64,000 nucleotides of DNA, taken from assembly GCA_030390025.1 (NCBI GenBank), contig JASTWF010000138.1:434001-498000 (forward strand), given 5' to 3'. Source of the DNA: Squalus acanthias (Eukaryota). Positions 1 to 46,593 of this stretch are shown in pieces. Both the position numbers and the translations under genes were made by a program. Numbering within the stretch: position 1 is the first letter of the stretch; each line of letters begins with the position of its first letter. Under the pieces are notes generated by a model that saw nothing but the letters and a program-made list of their open reading frames with translations, was not told where the DNA came from and did not search any database.

Positions 1-143
1 CTTGTCATTGACGGTCCACTTGACGAAGATCTCTCGTGGGGAGAAACCTCTCACTAAGCAGGTGAGGCTGACGAACCACTGAGCGGAGACTCCTTCTGCC
101 GGGGGCAGGAGGACAGACACGGACGGTTCCCGCGGATCTTCAA
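1..143 (-). CDS. IGHM: IgM heavy chain Cmu4 exon (5' part; continues beyond window)
   Basis: Acceptor tctgcag| then phase-1 open frame (V)[47 protein letters not shown], a C1-set domain typical of shark IgM CH4. Confidence 0.9.
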
Positions 144-661
144 CTGCAGAACAATTACAATAAAGGTCAATAAACTGGAGAATTCCAGAGACAATGAAAC
201 CGGCGGTTAGATGTGAGAGAAATGTGCTTTGCGCTGAATTTTAAAGGACTCCCTTTTCCCCTCTGTGTCCTGTCCGGTTTTCCAGCCCGGAGCAGAGGGA
301 GATAGAATCCTTCTTTCTGGGAGCTTGAAGAGTTGGAATGGAAAATTACATGGAATTCACATCATAGAAACAGACCATTCGGCCCAACTGGTCAATGCCG
401 CTGTTTATGCTCCACACGAGACTCCTCCCACCTTACTTCATCTAACCCTAATAACATATCCTTCTATTCCTTTTTTCCTCATTGACTTATCCAGCTTCCC
501 TTTAAATGCATCATCTCGGGTCCCAGAGGTTTTAATTAGTGGAATTACCCATTGAATTATCAGAGCAGTCCATTAAAACACTGAATAGAACGAATTGGGC
601 CGTGAACAAGCACCAGAAATAGTCACAGAGTCTCACTCATTGCTACAATCTCACCGCTCAC

Positions 662-970
662 CTTTTTCCTTGTGGATGGAATCTCTTATAGGAGTCGCCA
701 TATCCTGATGGCTCACCACGCAGTAGAACTCATCCCCACTCAACCAGGCTTGTGTCGAGATGTTTAAGTTGCTGATCACACTGTTGGGAGCCTCTCCGGG
801 TTGGACGGCAATCTCTGATTTCAAAGTCTCCTTTTCTCGGGTCCAGGACACGTTGACTCCATAAGGAGCATTAGACACGACGCAGGTTAAGGTCACCGTC
901 GCCTCCAGTAAGACCTGTTCCAGTGACGGTTGCGGAAGAGTGATTTCTGGATCGCTGCATGAGGAACCAT
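662..970 (-). CDS. IGHM: IgM Cmu3 exon
   Basis: Acceptor ttcacag|, donor |GTGAGC; 309 nt; (D)[42 protein letters not shown]...[22 protein letters not shown]. Confidence 0.92.
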
Positions 971-3154: not shown

Positions 3155-3472
3155 CCGGAGATCTGGAGATGTTTCTGCTTTGGAGGATTCGTTCATGAGT
3201 GACCTGGCAGGTATAGACCGAGCCGGCGAACCACTCCCCGGCGGTGAATGTCAGCCGACTGGTCGCCGAGAAGTTCCCATTCACTTCAAAGACGGGAGAG
3301 GTGACGAAGCCCGAATCCATGAGCCGTCCATTCTTCAGCCAATTCACGGTCAGTGACTTTGGACGGAAATCGATGATTGAACACACGGCGGTTGCATATC
3401 TGCTGCTGGTGATTTCTTCATTGGAACTCAGGGTGAGGATCACAGTTGGAGGGACGATGTCCCGTTTCGAAC
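3155..3472 (-). CDS. IGHM: IgM Cmu2 exon
   Basis: Acceptor ttttgaag|, donor |GTAAGA; 318 nt; (G)[13 protein letters not shown]...[21 protein letters not shown]...YTCQVTH. Confidence 0.92.
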
Positions 3473-3891: not shown

Positions 3892-4191
3892 CTGGCATTT
3901 CGACGCTTAAGTCCGACCCACTTTGTCGAACCTGGCAGTAGATGGCGCTGCTCCCCACCTCTGACTCGGTGATGGTTAACTGGCTGCTCAGGGTGTAGGT
4001 TCCCTTCTTGTTGAACACTGACGGGTAGGTCTTCAATCCAGTGGTGATCGGCTCTTTATCTTTGCTCCAGGAAAGGCTGGTGATTTCCGGGAAGTAGTCC
4101 ATCGCCAAACAGCCGTAGGTGACGGGGCCGCCGGTGTTGGGTTGTTCACAGGAGGAGAGCAGGGCGTAGAGGGTGGGAGGAGACTGTGTCG
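3892..4191 (-). CDS. IGHM: IgM Cmu1 exon
   Basis: Acceptor ctttcccag|, donor |GTTAGT; 300 nt; (A)[16 protein letters not shown]...[16 protein letters not shown]...IYCQVRQ. Retains the N-terminal Cys expected for the light-chain disulfide. Confidence 0.93.
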
Positions 4192-6490: not shown

Positions 6491-9449
6491 GCATCACATT
6501 GTCGATTTAAATTCTCAAAATAACTTCCAGCCTCCCATCAGATCAGAACAGGCGCTGCTTTCTGGAGCGTTGCAGTCACTTCCTGAAACTGTTTGTTCTG
6601 ATAGAGAGCTCAGGATCAGGCCAATCTCATTCAATCATTCTCTGATACACAAAATGTTTAAACGTTATCAATTCGTTATAAGTTGGGCAATTTTTTTGAA
6701 AGAAGACTAAACTCAATAAATGCGCGGATGTTTCACCGGAGAGATGGATATATTTTTAGATATCTGGCTCTCGCACTCGCGCCTTATTAGTTAGATGCCG
6801 ATTAAGGTTCCTTCAACACTGTTGCAACAAACACTCAGGTCAGATACCGGACAAATACGATAGGGCACTGCAAAGGGAGATTTACTTCGTCATGCGCTGT
6901 AAGGTAAGGTTGAATTCAAATTAAATATCCTACTCCACTGCCCTGTCCGACACTCCAGGTATAGCAAGGTTTAGATTCCTAATAAAGTTCCCTTTACACT
7001 GTCCCGTCAAACATACCCAGGGTAGGTACAGCACAGGTTAGAAACTAATTAAAGCTCCTTCTATAGTCTCTCTGCCGTGTTTCTGAACTGCTCCATCTGA
7101 ATGTCACAAACTGGGTTCCTGATCTCATTTCCGAGGCGCCTCCTCAACCTTAAAGTCAACCGTTCAAGTTTCTCACAGATACAAGTTTCATAATAATTCA
7201 GTCAAATTACACTTGCTGAAATACAGGAGCACGAACCAGCCGGTTTACAACCAGTCAGGAGGACTCCTGATTCTCACACAGTGAGCAGGCGCACAGAAAC
7301 AGAACAGACACAAACGGTGCAACAATCGTGCTCTCAGCAGATAGATCTGTTCAATCTGTCAATTTCAATGAAGCTGATTTCTAATTGATCTCTTGTCAAT
7401 TTCCGACCACCTCAACTCTGCACGTTTTTTTTAAACTTAAACTGGTATTCATGAAAAACACTTCAACATCCAACCATTTCTCGTCTCTGTCGGCAATCTT
7501 ACAAACCGAGTAAGATTTAATTTCCCTGAAAATAAGTAGCTCGAAATAATTCACATTCGAAGCAATTTTCTGCCCGTAACACAGGGACTCGGTGACAGAG
7601 TAAGAATTTAACAAACGAGGAGACACTTACATTGAAAACCGATTACACACTGATTTAATATAATTTCTTAATTAAATATAACCTTTAAAGTCACCGAGGG
7701 AAATCACGAAGTTAATTCATTAAAATCTGCGGCGACACTTTCTCGCGCTGAGCACAGCTGAGTCAGATATGTATTGTTTCTGAATTAATTTTAGACTTAA
7801 ATAAAAGTTCTCTCCAACCATTGAGATTTTGCAGTAACTGTATTCCTGTCCAGTGTGCAACGCAATTGTGAGAGGTCATTTATGTTTAATGAATTAGCAC
7901 TGATGTTATATTGTAAGTTAATATTCATGTTAACTAATGTTACACCGTATAATTGAAAATATTCTTCGAGCCTGTCTGGCCCTTCCTCCTCAGAACCACA
8001 TGCACCTGTAACTTTTGTAATTAAATTAATCTGCTCGAATTTCAGTGTGTTATTTGTCATCTCCAGCCTTATTAATACAATTAATTAATAGTAATTTTAA
8101 ACCTGTTTCTGCCTGGTAACTTATGAAATTAGGGTTTTAATAAAATTGGCATGATAATTCATCAATATTAAAATATAAACATCATATTTATACATAACGC
8201 AAGCAGACAAATATATAATTTTTACTTAAATCAAATCATATTTGAATAATTAATACTGATCACAAACTTCTAATACTGTCCTGATCTCTACCTACACCTT
8301 TGTAAACTCTTCATGTTTCTGAACGCTCTGATATAACATAAACTCCGTCTATTCTCAGAGTGGATTTCACATTATGGATTTAGGAATGGACTATTTAAAA
8401 AAAATCAAAGTCCGGCCGGGGTCACATCTCACTAACAACCGATGGGCGGCAACACCGCCTGTTTACTAAAGCTGGACTCTCGAGTTGAAATATTCTTCTC
8501 AATCTTAACTTTAAAAAAATATTTTCATGAATTAAAAAACACCCGGGTAGTTTGCAGTCAGTAACAGAGCCTCCGCTATTTAATAACACGGACAACCTTT
8601 TATATTTTACTCCCGTAATTCACACAATGCCCGTAAATTAATAATTAAATATATTCCGCTATTTATTGAAAATAATCTCCAGAATGATCAGTGTAAAACT
8701 GGCAGAGAACAATTCATTCAGACCATCTGCGATACTGAAACTTAATGAGCAAATGGAGGAGAGACATTGTTAATCAATTTACTATTGATCAGAATTAAAC
8801 ATAACTCTCAGATATACTCCGTCCTTTGCCTATCGTTCTATCCCGTATACAGCAGGGCTATGGGAGATAGGATGTTGTTTTAAATTCAAAATAATATGAA
8901 CCTTTTGTGAGTAAATTAATCGCCTTGAATTTCAATGGGTTATTTGTCTGTCTCCAGCCTTACGCAGTCTGAACCTTCCATGTATTAAAATAGAATCGCA
9001 TGAACAATTCTTTGACTGCTTCTGTCTCTCAACCTTTGAACTTGCTGATTAGTTTAGTGATAATTGTTTCGCCATCAAACAACCAATAATATTGAAAGAG
9101 TAACAAGGATTCGGCTGCACAGTATGAATTTACTAACTCGGCAGATATGTTAAATTGACAAACTGCAATTTACAACAAGGATTTAAGTTGTATTTAAATA
9201 CAACCCGTCATTCATCTGTGTAAAACCGGAGGTAGCCAGTAATTGAGCGCCCCCAATCAAACTGAACACAGCGCTGGAATCAATATGTTGTTATTAAAAT
9301 AATTTCAGGCATAATGAAAAACTGTCTCCAGCCTCTAAAATGTTCCGCTCACGTTAATTGTTCCCACTGTAGAGCAGAATTGTGGAGGGCGAATAATGTT
9401 TAGTAAATTAATATTTATACTACAGCATATTTTAGTGACATTGGGGATA

Positions 9450-10650
9450 TTATCGCATTACAATCGTTGATTAATATTAATTTTATTTAACTACAACCTG
9501 AACACTTGTTAATTATGTAGGTCGTAATCACAGTAACATTTCACGCATTAAATATGAGCGTCGCAAAGCATAGATTAATGGCTGAATGCATAATTATCAC
9601 TTAAATAAAAAGATATGTTAAAATACCTTTCAATGATTTTTGATTTCTAAAACCTTCCTGTTTTCTGCCTACGATCTTCTTTCAAACAGTTTTAAACACA
9701 TGTAATGTTTGCAATAGATCCGAAACCTGCTGCCGCTCGATGTGACCGAGATTAAACATTGTACAAACGCCAAATAGTTTCACAAATTCTAGTTATTCAG
9801 AGTAACACAGGCACAAACTCTCCTCAGCAGATCAACATTCTCGATAGAACCCTTCATGGAGCAGCAGCTTCATTCTATAAACCCTTTCCGCAGAATCAAA
9901 TACAACATTGCAAAAAAATCTCAATACAGAATCCAGCGAACAAGCCTATCACTCAAATAACTAATTATTTAAATTAACAGAAATATAAATAATGACAGTA
10001 GAATTGTGAGCAGACGGAACATGTTTAATACATTAATATTGATGTTGTAGCATTTTTTAAATAATATTGGGTAATATTACTAAATTACAATAATTTAATT
10101 TATATTAATTTAAATTTGTTCTGGCTGCAAATTTGTTAATTTTGTAGTTATTAATTACAGTAACATTTCACTTATTGAATATGACCGTTGCTGTACATTA
10201 GATTAATAGATGACAATGTAATTATCACAAATAAAAATACATTAAAATATCTTAAGATTATTTTTGACCGCTGTAGATTTCTGTTTTCTGCCGACAATCT
10301 TATTTCAAACACATTTAGTCACATAATGTTTACATTTGATCAGAAAACCTGCAACCATTAGATGTCACCGAGATTAAACATTGTAGAAACGCCAAACAGT
10401 TCAACAACCGTTAGGTATTTAAAGAACTCCGGGCTCACAGTCTCATCAGCAGATAAACACCAAATCACATCAATCAGGGACTCAACCCCTCAACAATATA
10501 TTTTTCTGAAGAACCATTTTAATTCTATTATCCCTTTGTAGCAGAATCAAATAAAACATTGCAAAAAATCTCAGTACATAATACACCGAACCAAAGTTTC
10601 AGTGAATGAATGAATTACTGAAATAAACAGAAATATAAAATAAAGACACA
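9450..10650. repeat. Diverged tandem duplication (about 620-bp period) next to JH
   Basis: acagtaacatttcac at about 9530 and 10157; accgagattaaacattgta at about 9745 and 10367; acattgcaaaaaa at about 9905 and 10556. Confidence 0.75.
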
Positions 10651-10686
10651 AATACAACCGTTACTGAAAGAGTGAATGTGTCTTAC

Positions 10687-10742
10687 CTGCAGTCACCGTC
10701 ACCATGGTGCCTTGTCCCCAGTATTCGAAGTAGTTGGTATAC
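10687..10742 (-). CDS. IGHJ: JH segment, probably with a pre-joined D2 remnant (DJ)
   Basis: G TAT ACC AAC TAC TTC GAA TAC TGG GGA CAA GGC ACC ATG GTG ACG GTG ACT GCA G|GTAAGA = YTNYFEYWGQGTMVTVTA; WGxG motif; phase-1 donor matches Cmu1. Confidence 0.93.
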
Positions 10743-10770
10743 CACAGTGAGACTCGCCGTGCCAAATACT
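10743..10770 (-). other. 12-bp-spacer RSS 5' of JH
   Basis: Reading away from the coding end: CACAGTG (10743-10749), 12 nt spacer, CCAAATACT (10762-10770; 6/9 match to ACAAAAACC). No nonamer-like sequence at 22-23 nt spacing. Confidence 0.75.
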
Positions 10771-11083
10771 GCGGTGGACTTTTAACTGCAAAATACAGAG
10801 ATGAAATTCCACAGCGCTCTCAAAACCCTGATTCCGACTCCCCTAAGAGTGAATCAGTGAGATATTTCAGTTTGTGCTGGTAATTATCTTTATAAAGGAG
10901 ATTAGAACACTTCTGAAGCACCTGTGCAGATTTAGCACGACAATCAACACTAATAAAGCAGAACACTTTCATACATTTTTACAAATCTTCATTACTTTTA
11001 ACCATTATTTTAATTTAAGCCTAATGTTCTCCGACGCTCCTGCCGTGGCAGTGATCGCAGGTGTGAGCAAACTCCCTGTCTGG

Positions 11084-11121
11084 GGTTTTTGTATGAGGAG
11101 CTCGCTCTGTACAGCACCGTG
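11084..11121 (-). other. 22-bp-spacer RSS 3' of VH(D)
   Basis: CACGGTG (11121-11115), 22 nt spacer, perfect ACAAAAACC (11092-11084). Confidence 0.92.
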
Positions 11122-11437
11122 ACCCCCTGTACGTCTCTTGCACAGTAATAGATGGCGGTGTCTTCGGTCCTCAGGTTCTTCATGTCCAAAGCGAAGATGC
11201 TGTTTGAAGTGTCTTTGGACGCAGTAAATCGGCTCTGAATCCCTGGGGCGTAGCCATTGTTCGATGAACTTTGATATCTAACCAGCCACTCCAGCCCCTG
11301 CCCGGGATACTGCCGGACCCAGTGCATGGTGTAGCTGCCAAGATCGAACCCGCTGGTTTTACAGGTCAGGCTCAGGGAGCCTCCGGGACTCCTGGTCTCT
11401 ACCTCCGGCTGAGTCAACACGACATCCGACTGGACAC
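11122..11437 (-). CDS. IGHV: IgM VH exon with D-like 3' extension (VD)
   Basis: Acceptor ttttacag|; (G)[51 protein letters not shown]...[10 protein letters not shown] followed by GTACAGGGGGT before the heptamer; no stops. Confidence 0.95.
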
Positions 11438-11564
11438 CTGTAAAAACAATCAAAAACCCCGAGGATTAATCCTGGTGAAATGATTCCTGACTCTGTAACA
11501 TTCCAGAGAGAGACTAACACTGAGACAGTAACAGTGAGAGACTTGGACAATAAAAACTACTCAC

Positions 11565-11610
11565 CGGATAAGAAAGCCAGCAACAGACTGAGAGAAATCG
11601 CCGACCTCAT
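11565..11610 (-). CDS. VH leader exon
   Basis: ATG AGG TCG GCG ATT... = MRSAISLSLLLAFLS + G|GTGAGT; 46 nt, phase 1, hydrophobic signal peptide. Confidence 0.92.
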
Positions 11611-11790: not shown

Positions 11791-13318
11791 CACATCACCA
11801 ACAGAATGGACTCACATCTGGACTGTCAATGAAATCCCTTTATTTCCTCACTCCTTCACAGGAGATGTGAATCTCTCAGATTAAATTACATTATCAGAGT
11901 CTAAAGAGACTGCCAGTATGTGTTACTCCATCTCCCGCTACCATCCTTCACTCTGTCCCAATAAAGTATCCGCTATATTATGAATCGCTTTAGATCTATG
12001 TACCTGAATGCGGGAGGTGCGTAATGTGATTCTATTTACAATGTGGATGGCTGTAGCTACACGATTTGGGTCCGAAGATGAGTAGAAAGCCCTGATGTTA
12101 TACAAATGTCTCTGATTGCATTTCTCTAACGGCTCCTGAGTCTGTGACCCTAACAGTCCTTTATAAAATTAGTTGTTAAATAAGTCCGCTTGCCTGATAA
12201 TTAAGGAGTGAGTTGACAGAGACACGTAAGAATATGGGGCCCGCCCGCTTCAGATCAACTTTTGAAAAAGAGAAGCAGGTGAATCAGAACCGATAACGCG
12301 ATCAGCAAAACCCCGGCATCCAAATCCTTGCAGCAAACTTTAATAGCGACCGAATGTGTAACATGCACTGGTATCAGGAACACAATATATCAGGACATAG
12401 CGGTATGTTGCAGAATATCACAAGAAAAAATGCTTCATCTCCCGCTGAAACAGATCACAAACTGGGCATTTCTCTGCCCATTGGTAGCCGGGCTCTGAGA
12501 GGAGTTGTTTAGGAATTCAAATCAGCACAAATTAAACTGCACAGTGCGCGGCTGCTAATCAGTAATAAGGGAGCCCTTAGTTTCAATCAGGCTCACAACT
12601 CTGAGAATATTCAAGGAAGTGCAGCGGGATCGAGGCAATTCCACCTGTTGTTTTATTTACTTTCCGATTCCCACTGATCTCATTACAGTGTGGGTGTGGA
12701 GTCATTAACATCTCTCTCCAGCACTTCGTGCAGTGCTGAATAAACCGACTGAATTATCTGGAATTATCTTTATTAGGATTTTTTTAATTAATTAGCATGT
12801 GGATCAATTTACTTTTTCTGCTCCTATTTTATAATATTGTGAGCAAGGAATTTACCGAAAATCATCCTTTAGATGTAATATCATGTAAAATGTTTCTTTC
12901 ATCTAACAGCGGTGCAGAATAATTTAATGTTCAAATAGTTAAATCCCATCCTGTTTCCCAATTCATATTCACGCCAATCTGCCCCACACAGTATTTGGCA
13001 GCAACCCAGCCGATTGCCGTCAGGGAGGCTCGAACACCCAATGTCATTTACAGGAAGCATCTGGGGGTTCTGTGCAGTGAATCAAAGATCTGTTTCCTCA
13101 CTACTGACTGCTTGGCTGAAAGCCAACTTCAAACCCTTAACATTGTGAGTGAGGCCTATTGATAAACAAATCTGCCCAGCAACAGTACTGGAGTCAATTT
13201 AATTATTTAGTTGTGTAACTGTGTGTAACTGTTCCCATCTCTCAGGATAGGAAATATATCCAGTGTCTGAGACATCCTGTCAGCAGCAGCAGTCAGCTGG
13301 AGGGACTGTCCAGCACAT

Positions 13319-13496
13319 NNNNNNNNNNNNNNNNNNNNNNNNNNNNNNNNNNNNNNNNNNNNNNNNNNNNNNNNNNNNNNNNNNNNNNNNNNNNNNNNNN
13401 NNNNNNNNNNNNNNNNNNNNNNNNNNNNNNNNNNNNNNNNNNNNNNNNNNNNNNNNNNNNNNNNNNNNNNNNNNNNNNNNNNNNNNNNNNNNNNNN
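13319..13496. other. Assembly gap (178 N)
   Basis: Run of N between the IgM cluster and the TCR V genes. Confidence 1.
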
Positions 13497-16925: not shown

Positions 16926-17599
16926 ATTTCAATTGCATTAATCAAAAGTTTTGTAATTGAAATCTTGAAGTTACTATTTGTGATATTAGGTTGTGGATGC
17001 TTAATGGCAACGGTAATAACCGATGTTATTTCAAAATACTGGATATAATTTATCACCTGAGCGCATTAAGCATTTTAGTAACAGCTTGGGTAAAGTGACA
17101 ATATTCTGGTTTCAGAATCAGTAGATTGTGGACTTCACCTCAACTTCAGCACCTGAGCACATTAACTAGGTGTCCAATCGGTGCAGCACTGAAAAGGAAC
17201 GACGTTTCCTGAACCAATAATCTCTCCCCGCCCGCCGCACCTTGTCTGTTGAGGTGGACATTAAAGCTCCCAGGGCCCCACACTGTGTCCGGGTCAACAT
17301 TCCTCCCTTCAACCAAGTTCAACAGAAATATATTAACAGGAACCGAGCCACTTTGCTCTTTTGCTGATCCTTCTGAGCGCGAATCGGCCACGTTCACCTG
17401 TAATTAGTTGCAATTTAAATCCTTTGGGAGCTCTCCCAGAATGTGATGAGGTGGTACATCAATGCAAGGTGTTTCTTGATATATTAATTTCAGAAACAGT
17501 AACTGACATCATCATTTTCCCAATAGGAGCAATGGCAAACCTTGGTCACCAGGTGGCAGCGAAACTCGATTGTTTACATCACACTGAACAGGTGCTGCC

Positions 17600-17985
17600 T
17601 CAGTTATGACTACGCTACAACCTGTCCCTATTTATATTACACTAGGCCCTGTCTCTATTTTTATTACACTGCAGCTTGCCTCAATTATAACTGCACTAGA
17701 ACCTGTCTCGGTTTATATTACATTAGACCCTGTCTTATTTATTACTGCACTAGACCCTGTCTCTGTTTATATTACACTGAGCCCTGTCTCTGTTTATATT
17801 ACAGTAGACCCTGTCACTGTTTATATTACACTAGACCCTGTCTCTGTTTATATTACACTGGACCATGCCTCTGTTTATATTACACTAGACCCTGCCTCTG
17901 TTTATATTACACGAGACCCTGTCTCTGTTTATATTACACTAAACCCTGTCTCTGTTTATATTACACTAGGCCCTGTCTCAGCTAT
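17600..17985. repeat. 27-bp minisatellite
   Basis: Unit ctctgtttatattacactagaccctgt, about 13 copies. Confidence 0.9.
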
Positions 17986-18179
17986 CACTGTTCCAGACTA
18001 TTTCTCTGTTAAATGGATAGATAGGTATTAATATAAATAAAGTTATATATGTGAGTGGGTGGCAGGATGCAATACTTTTTTGGATGGAAGCAGTTGTTTA
18101 GTCCTGTTAATAGGTATCACCTGCTGTGTGCAATTTCTAATTGATCTGGTATTTTGTCGGTAATATTTGTGTTGAAAGG

Positions 18180-27938: not shown

Positions 27939-28466
27939 GTAGGTATTTCATGAGATTGTAATAGTTCATTTGTTTATTAATGGTAGTTATATTTCTCCTC
28001 TAATGTTTATTGTCTCCACTGTTGACAACACTGCCATATTGACGTACGGTCCTCGGGTTTTGCCCCCCGGTCAGTGAGTGTTCGTAGATTATTCCAAATC
28101 GCCACAACATGGCCGGGCACTGTAAACACGGCAGATTCACGGAGATGCATATTCTCGCGGGAACGGGACCCAGGCTGATTAACCCACTTGTTCCGAGACA
28201 CTGAGACCATTGTACCGTCCACAGCCTGCGATCAGCTAAATGAGGCGCGAAAGCTTTGGACCTTCCCATTCTGTTTCACATTGGCAGTGCGGTTAACAGC
28301 TGAATCAAAGGGGAGATGTGTGTTTGATTGTGTGGTTGTTTGTGTGTATGTGTCTGCGTATGAATGTCTGTTTGTGTGTGTTCTCCAACTATGTGCTTGG
28401 TCTAAAGTAGAAAAACTTTTTATATCTAAATGTTCTATTGATAACCTCCTCTTACTCTGTTTCCAG

Positions 28467-28774
28467 AACCCAGCCGGCAGGATAACCTTTCTCAAGGGCC
28501 TTCACTAGCAACAGTGAGTGAAGGAGATACTGTGCTGTTGCCCTGTAACTACCCCGTCATCTACACAGCCGCTAACCTATTCTGGTATGTACAGTACTCG
28601 GGAACAGGCCTGCAGTATATGCTCGTCAGACACACTGCTGGGAATGAAGAGAACGCACCGGCCTTTACAAAGCGGTTTTCTGCCGTACAGGACAGAATGA
28701 ACAAAAAGATCCCTTTGAACATCACACACACCCAGCTGTCTGACTCCGCCGTGTATTACTGCGCGGCTATGTAG
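28467..28774 (+). CDS. TCR alpha/delta-type V segment 1
   Basis: Acceptor ttccag|; (E)PSRQDNLSQGPSLATVSEGDTVLLPCNYPVIYTAANLFWYVQYSGTGLQYML...RFSA...LNITHTQLSDSAVYYCAAM*; canonical Cys/Trp/Cys. Confidence 0.88.
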
Positions 28775-28813
28775 CACCGCGTTACATGAACCCTTGACAC
28801 TGGTACAAAAACT
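28775..28813 (+). other. 23-RSS of TCR V1
   Basis: CACCGCG + 23 nt + ACAAAAACT. Confidence 0.85.
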
Positions 28814-30987: not shown

Positions 30988-31187
30988 NNNNNNNNNNNNN
31001 NNNNNNNNNNNNNNNNNNNNNNNNNNNNNNNNNNNNNNNNNNNNNNNNNNNNNNNNNNNNNNNNNNNNNNNNNNNNNNNNNNNNNNNNNNNNNNNNNNNN
31101 NNNNNNNNNNNNNNNNNNNNNNNNNNNNNNNNNNNNNNNNNNNNNNNNNNNNNNNNNNNNNNNNNNNNNNNNNNNNNNNNNNNNNNN
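30988..31187. other. Assembly gap (200 N)
   Basis: Run of exactly 200 N. Confidence 1.
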
Positions 31188-37152: not shown

Positions 37153-37459
37153 GTCTGAGCCAGGAAATCTCTGTCAGACAGCGGCTTCCCACAGTGAGGA
37201 GGACAGAAGGAAGCATTGTAACTTTAGACTGTGTCTATTTCACCACCAAGAGTTCCTACAGCTTACTGTGGTCCCGTCAATACCCCGGCAGAGAACCGGA
37301 GCTTCTTGTTCGCAGGTTTTCAGGCGGTTACCAAATTAAAGCGGACTTTGCTCGCAGCCGTTTCTCCTCTGCGCTGGACGCCTCGAATGCCGCCTTCACC
37401 TTAACCGTCTCCAAACTGCGGCCTGCTGACTCCGCCACGTATTACTGCGCGCTGACTCT
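37153..37459 (+). CDS. TCR alpha/delta-type V segment 2
   Basis: (G)LSQEISVRQRLPTVRRTEGSIVTLDCVYFTTKSSYSLLWSRQYPGREPELL...DFARSRFSSALD...FTLTVSKLRPADSATYYCALT; open frame; WSRQ in place of WYRQ. Confidence 0.92.
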
Positions 37460-37498
37460 CACAGCGGTGGGAACCAGTTAGGCCCTCGTACAAAAACT
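37460..37498 (+). other. 23-RSS of TCR V2
   Basis: CACAGCG + 23 nt + ACAAAAACT. Confidence 0.92.
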
Positions 37499-46200: not shown

Positions 46201-46283
46201 GGAACGGCTATATTCCTGAGATATCTTTTGGAACTGACTGGTGTTGTCCGCTTTGCTCCATTAATAACATTGTTTTTTTACAG

Positions 46284-46554
46284 GTAAAGAGGAAGTTGTA
46301 CAAACATTTCCGTCACAGACTCCCAGTGAATTGAAAACCACATCGATGAACTGTCACACAACCACTCCGTTCACCGCGATATACTGGTACGTACAGCCTC
46401 CAAACCAGAGCCCAAAGCTGTTGATAATGGCATCGGAAAAGGGTGAACATAAAGGTCGATTCACAGCCGTCAGTCGAAGTTCGGAGAATCGCAGCTCCCT
46501 GACTATCGCGGCCTTACTTCTGACAGACACCGCGACCTACTTCTGTGTCGTACA
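46284..46554 (+). CDS. TCR alpha/delta-type V segment 3
   Basis: Acceptor ttttacag|; (G)KEEVVQTFPSQTPSELKTTSMNCHTTTPFTAIYWYVQPPNQSPKLLI...KGRFTA...SSLTIAALLLTDTATYFCVV; TRAV-like; open frame. Confidence 0.92.
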
Positions 46555-46593
46555 CACAGTGTAATAAGGAGCGACAGAGTCCGTACAAAAACC
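46555..46593 (+). other. Consensus 23-RSS of TCR V3
   Basis: CACAGTG + 23 nt + ACAAAAACC (perfect consensus). Confidence 0.95.

Follow-up and report, generated by a model that had tools for sequence, protein, structure and literature searches.

Heavy-chain immunoglobulin clusters that are joined in part or in full outside the ordinary somatic sequence of events are described as: (i) germline VD-J, VD-DJ and VDJ clusters, all named in a 2016 review (PMC5192425), the VD-J germline form being named also in PMC4279169, (ii) rearranged, partially rearranged and non-rearranged H-chain clusters, as set out in PMC2193156, and (iii) nurse shark IgM1gj, a fully germline-joined VDJ for which PMC4279169 and PMC5192425 propose an early-life role. 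Germline-joined Ig genes are the main evidence for RAG action in shark germ cells and are candidate 'hard-wired' antibodies. A full-text search, with older primary papers outside its scope, found the term VD-DJ only in PMC5192425 and PMC2435157 and brought up no primary paper that describes a germline VD-DJ cluster at the sequence level; extending it to the other partly joined forms, such as VD-J and VDD-J, yielded nothing further on the germline form.

The closest described systems also supply dimensions. In nurse shark IgM clusters, PMC2435157 places the segments ~400 bp apart, gives a J-Cmu1 distance of 6.3-6.8 kb and lists 2R products of 809-832 bp against ~433 bp for 3R, such that the last step amounts to ~380-400 bp. 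The bamboo shark has 37 IgM clusters, according to the part of PMC8692893 consulted, in which their joining states are not given. Elasmobranch IgH clusters are linked to the TCR alpha/delta locus, and VH-to-TCR-delta-D trans-rearrangements are known (PMC12227049). The Squalus acanthias cluster described here probably has the VD-DJ form in the assembled genome, with its four rearranging segments reduced to two: V is fused to D1 and D2 to J, and the D1-D2 intersegment is kept. It is a real, well-formed example of a kind known from cartilaginous fish and leaves the current picture unchanged.

Layout and relatives of the cluster

The window (the whole stretch of DNA analysed, 64 kb) carries the leader, V, J and C exons of one heavy chain on one strand (minus) over ~12 kb. 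The leader exon (11565..11610) is read directly, with an ATG at 11610..11608, a length of 46 nt and a donor GT at 11564..11563; a possible TATA-like TATTTAA lies ~90 nt upstream of it. An intron of 126 nt separates the leader from the VH exon (11133..11437), which is open, ends in TAC TGT GCA AGA GAC and matches Pfam V-set with 60.1 bits (cut-off 26). The JH segment (10687..10734) encodes ..YFEYWGQGTMVTVTA and is followed by a donor GT at 10686..10685 (GTAAGA after 10687). The Cmu1 exon (3892..4191), ~6.5 kb from J, the Cmu2 exon (3155..3472) and the Cmu3 exon (662..970) match C1-set above the curated cut-offs (52.6, 65.9 and 39.2 bits, respectively, with exons searched singly and not as a spliced model), while Cmu4 enters the window with its start (1..143; acceptor AG 145..144), in a frame open to the window edge. 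The leader, V, J and Cmu1-3 had been predicted to be open; all of them are, as are the first 143 nt of Cmu4, with AG/GT splice sites. A retro-copy origin is rejected on the presence of both the leader intron and the J-C intron.

The V exon is most similar to VH of Chiloscyllium punctatum, Heterodontus francisci and Scyliorhinus torazame (76-77% amino-acid identity; 55 hits at E <= 0.001 among 56 candidates) and is 77% identical to the Swiss-Prot entry HV01_HETFR of H. francisci. The best match of the Cmu2 exon is an S. torazame fragment (70% identity; 2 hits among 3 candidates). A protein atlas search for the isotype returned generic C1-set clusters only and nothing isotype-specific. The cluster appears to be an IgM-type heavy-chain minilocus of cartilaginous fish, where mu is assigned by V similarity, exon layout (three C1-set exons and the start of a fourth) and the J-Cmu1 distance, not by a tree, and where the exons for the secretory tail and TM fall outside the window.

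The region between V and J holds two coding extensions and two RSSs. The V exon runs into an 11-nt extension, GTACAGGGGGT (11132..11122), and a 22-spacer RSS (11084..11121) composed of the heptamer CACGGTG (11121..11115), a 22-nt spacer and the nonamer ACAAAAACC (11092..11084; 9/9 to consensus). The J side carries a 12-spacer RSS of opposite sense (10743..10770), composed of the nonamer AGTATTTGG (10770..10762; 6/9 to consensus), a 12-nt spacer and the heptamer CACTGTG (10749..10743), and then an 8-nt extension, GTATACCA (10742..10735). The intersegment between the nonamers (10771..11083) counts 313 bp, close to the ~310 bp of the original prediction, which also had the VH end with its 11 extra nt and 22-spacer RSS and the 12-spacer RSS before JH as they are found here. 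Its 5' extension of JH is likewise present, but measures 8 nt against a free paralogous J and not the 7 nt (GTATACC) originally read.

Chance origin of the two RSSs is excluded. The exact heptamer-22-nonamer pattern has one match in the window and none in each of 100 shuffles, and the 12-RSS pattern, at two mismatches or fewer, has one match against a shuffle mean of 0.03. The 22-RSS directly abuts the V-side extension and the 12-RSS the J-side extension; these two are among the 9 rows, at 6 heptamer sites, that a strict RSS scan returns from both strands of the 64 kb. When both strands of 10700-11160 are scanned under relaxed settings, no further RSS pair able to flank a D appears, in agreement with the earlier statement that no RSS-flanked D is visible; the sole extra row is a weak 5/7 + 5/9 site within the J coding sequence.

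Free segments in paralogous clusters and the two junctions

The identity of each segment was tested with the loose ends of paralogous short Logan contigs placed on the window. Four public runs were used: two samples of organism A, presumed to be DNA, one of organism D, and one run of organism A (X16) guessed to be RNA. Each free-segment identification is drawn from one to three short contigs, for which the length of the matched part is not displayed.

Free V segments are found in contigs of runs X5 and X8, in which the match to the V exon stops at 11133 and gives way to ..CTCGCTGTG, with the heptamer CACAGCG and a spacer unlike that of the window. As the free V ends exactly at GAC with another RSS, the 22-RSS of the window is not the V's own. 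One X5 contig instead joins the 22-RSS to a free D1: it matches the RSS side and ten extension nt up to 11131, beyond which it reads GTAC, CACAGTG, a 12-nt spacer and the A-rich nonamer ACAAATA. The free D1 is thus 14 nt long (GTAC+TACAGGGGGT) and lies between a 5' 12-RSS of its own and, on the 3' side, the RSS of the window. Over its last 10 nt, the V-side extension matches this D1 with 0 or 1 mismatch, at 11126, where the corresponding place in the free D1 is G or T and the single X5 contig over 11126 carries the other letter.

On the J side, one X1 contig matches the 12-RSS from 10740 rightwards and joins it to a free D, with ~10 more coding nt and the heptamer-like TGCTGTG on the other side. 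The 12-RSS of this free D is not the one found 5' of the free D1, and the segment is therefore read as D2. In an X5 contig, a free J agrees with the window as far as 10734 and continues with CACAGTG TTACATTCCCCGGGCTGGGTCA; contigs of X1 and X8 carry the same long-spacer J RSS after slightly different J starts, with the heptamer at or before 10734. Since the free J begins at 10734 and carries another RSS, of the long-spacer (23-type) kind, the J's own RSS is absent from the window. In paralog contigs, each end of the intersegment runs on into a free D segment, and contigs at least 90% alike cover it piecewise in two stretches (10746-10973 and 10977-11165). A single-D or D-less layout is rejected on the paralog contigs.

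The original prediction had read the 22-RSS as the 3' RSS of D1 and the 12-RSS as the 5' RSS of D2. The X5 and X1 contigs agree with these identities, and the free V end at 11133 and free J start at 10734, each with another RSS, bear out the V-D1 and D2-J fusions proposed with them. As read from the loose ends of paralog contigs only, the extensions and RSSs belong to D1 and D2 in the way foreseen.

At the V-D1 junction of the window, GAC is followed by G and TACAGGGGGT. Two readings fit: four D1 nt were trimmed and one was added, or a D1 short of one TAC unit was joined without loss. A contig of the presumed DNA run X1 spans this junction but lacks 1 nt at 11132; its depth of 74.6, compared to ~17-25 for exact-match contigs of X1, indicates a near-identical VD join elsewhere at more than single-copy depth. 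At the D2-J junction, the first six of the 8 nt match the start of the free D2 (GTACAC) at 5/6 positions, and the two further nt are unassigned; the extension is read as a D2 remnant that may include junctional nucleotides. The D2 origin of the 8 nt fused to J is argued mainly by their position.

Predicted rearrangement and competing readings

On this reading, both fusions show the anatomy of coding joints, in that the V RSS, the D1 5' RSS, the D2 3' RSS and the J RSS are all lost, while the 22-spacer RSS of D1 and the 12-spacer RSS of D2 remain intact and face each other across the original intersegment. A single RAG-mediated deletion between these two RSSs would take out 379 bp, both heptamers included, and yield a complete V domain. 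The two RSSs are the pair of a normal D1-to-D2 join, and the 12/23 rule is thus observed. The CDR3 would start with the V end and the D1 stub and finish with the D2 stub and J, both being fixed germline residues, and trimming and N addition would be confined to one junction, with diversity arising there only. These steps are derived from established V(D)J mechanics. An untrimmed precise join spans 45 nt from the Cys codon to the Trp codon and is in frame. The gene was originally described as functional in appearance and as giving a semi-invariant CDR3, and we infer the same. The cluster presents a clean case (both remaining RSSs intact, ORFs complete within the window and the precise join in frame), and its products could be told by the fixed D1 and D2 stubs on either side of one junction, which offers a simple experimental handle.

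The window's own V-J letters are seen in none of the contigs placed from the four runs, the best of which has 0.45 of the sampled words. Every X1 contig placed carries another letter at 10680, 10771-10781, 10899-10904, 11026, 11126, 11370 and 11401; at the same places, X5, X8 and X16 mostly carry another letter where covered, with some places uncovered or mixed. Exact-match contigs are displayed only at 9921-10110 and 10487-10623 (X1), at 12024-12127 (X5) and in the multi-copy leader region. Coverage holes prove nothing by this contig method, in which contigs resembling human DNA are dropped, and the absence of own-copy contigs is treated as missing confirmation, not as contradiction. The germline state of this exact copy is reached by reasoning, against which a '2R' partial rearrangement made somatically in a lymphocyte, or an artefact of the assembly, has to be weighed. 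Nurse shark B cells and thymocytes do pass through the VD-DJ form as a somatic intermediate (PMC2435157), and the exact junction letters of the window are in no placed contig. An assembly consensus, however, follows the read majority, whereas a single somatic clone would be rare; the window belongs to a large assembled piece, X1 contains a near-identical VD junction at multi-copy depth, and neither a collapse nor a mis-join could produce two coding joints together with the corresponding loss of four RSSs. A somatic or artefactual source is very improbable. Scarcely credible is a primary V(22/23)-(12)J layout that never held a D, in which the 11 and 8 nt are native V and J ends: it accounts for the bare light-chain-like anatomy of one long-spacer RSS facing one 12-RSS, but the paralogous free V ends at 11133, the free J starts at 10734, and both RSSs of the window are found on free D segments with a second RSS on the other side.

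The cluster may also be a germline VD-DJ gene that is a relic, never or hardly rearranged or expressed and adding nothing to the repertoire, which we regard as unlikely. The signature of its own product (a joint from 10736 or higher to 11132 or lower) is absent among the 15 joints listed of 25. Joints of X16 linking 10723-10735 to 11133-11140 across 12-31 other letters were rejected as products of this copy; they are ordinary VDJ family transcripts, none with both stubs. The lack of a cluster-specific joint or transcript among the joints listed for X16 would suit a relic, as would the private FR1 differences of the V exon from all placed paralogs (at 11370 and 11401) and the 12-RSS nonamer at just 6/9. 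The RNA evidence, however, is one guessed RNA run of short contigs that are unable to tell paralogs apart, the exons and splice sites within the window are all intact, the 22-RSS nonamer is perfect and, among the differences from paralogs that are listed, none falls inside the 12-RSS nonamer. A VD-DJ cluster able to complete its V domain in one step is the preferred reading.

Comparison with known joined and one-step systems

The plus strand of the window holds three TCR alpha/delta-like V segments, each with a 23-spacer RSS (ends near 28774, 37453 and 46554; the third is a V-set match), head-to-head with the IgM cluster. These neighbours fit the Ig/TCR-alpha-delta linkage described in PMC12227049, to which the position of the cluster adds a data point. 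It is conceivable, though doubtful, that VD-DJ clusters form a duplicated and selected subfamily that provides one-junction semi-invariant chains (e.g., to early-life or innate-like B cells), with the VD unit serving also as a possible donor for TCR delta trans-rearrangement. The donor role is suggested by the head-to-head TCR alpha/delta-like V segments and the 22-spacer RSS; if true, a fixed D1-encoded stub would be carried into TCR delta chains.

The known germline partly joined clusters of sharks likewise have a cluster organisation, a V fused to D with an RSS kept and a need for RAG to finish the gene. The cluster described here differs in that it sits among TCR alpha/delta-like V segments. 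IgM1gj (PMC4279169 and PMC5192425) resembles it in IgM-type germline joining and a predetermined CDR3. By contrast, IgM1gj needs no recombination and is without Cmu2, whereas the gene in the window keeps two RSSs and a Cmu2 exon.

The somatic 2R VD-DJ form of nurse shark, as presented in PMC2435157, has an identical topology in which the D1-D2 intersegment is kept. The nurse shark dimensions agree with those found here: the 2R-to-3R step of ~380-400 bp fits the predicted 379 bp, the segment spacing of ~400 bp fits the cluster and the J-Cmu1 distance of 6.3-6.8 kb matches ~6.5 kb. The two differ in setting, as 2R arises in single somatic cells while the VD-DJ form of Squalus stands in a genome assembly. 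A further likeness is to the one-step V-J joining of light chains, in which one long-spacer RSS similarly faces one 12-RSS at ~0.3 kb and a single junction is left to diversify; here, however, the RSSs come from D segments, the coding ends carry D remnants and the V, J and C exons are of the heavy-chain type.

A joint common to two runs

The contigs of X5, a public run presumed to be of DNA, and those of X16, a public run guessed to be of RNA, carry the same V-to-J joint, which leads from 10734 to 11135 with an identical 12 letters in between, at a depth of 96.6 in the former and 135 in the latter. That one joint with the same intervening letters occurs in both the presumed DNA run and the guessed RNA run suggests that a fully germline-joined and transcribed VDJ gene is present elsewhere in the organism.

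J segments and the J-Cmu1 intron

The organism has a second type of J, seen in contig ends that run on beyond the match at 10723; this segment is free (i.e., unjoined and with its own RSS), differs in the 5' part of its coding sequence and has the same long-spacer RSS as the other free J. The J-Cmu1 intron of the IgM cluster includes a tandem duplication of ~625-650 bp (9396-9990 vs. 10021-10640, in blocks at 70-96% identity), the start of which directly adjoins the donor site of J. The second copy shows no coding sequence resembling a J.

Surroundings of the cluster

The IgM cluster (minus strand) is arranged head-to-head with three TCR alpha/delta-like V segments on the plus strand (28466-28813, 37153-37493 and 46283-46593). 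Behind every one of the three stands a heptamer that a 23-nt spacer separates from a ACAAAAAC-type nonamer. The segment at 28466-28813 has a TAG two codons past the Cys codon, immediately ahead of the heptamer. The long ORFs at 17540-18030 (+) are built from a repeated unit of ~10 amino acids (..YYTRPCLCL..) and most likely represent a tandem DNA repeat, not a gene. The window also includes two runs of N (13319-13496, 178 nt; 30988-31187, 200 nt).

Private letters of the V exon

Two letters in FR1 of the V exon, at 11370 and 11401, are private to the window and absent from the compared contigs of all four runs. These letters encode S and V, where related shark VH have R and A.
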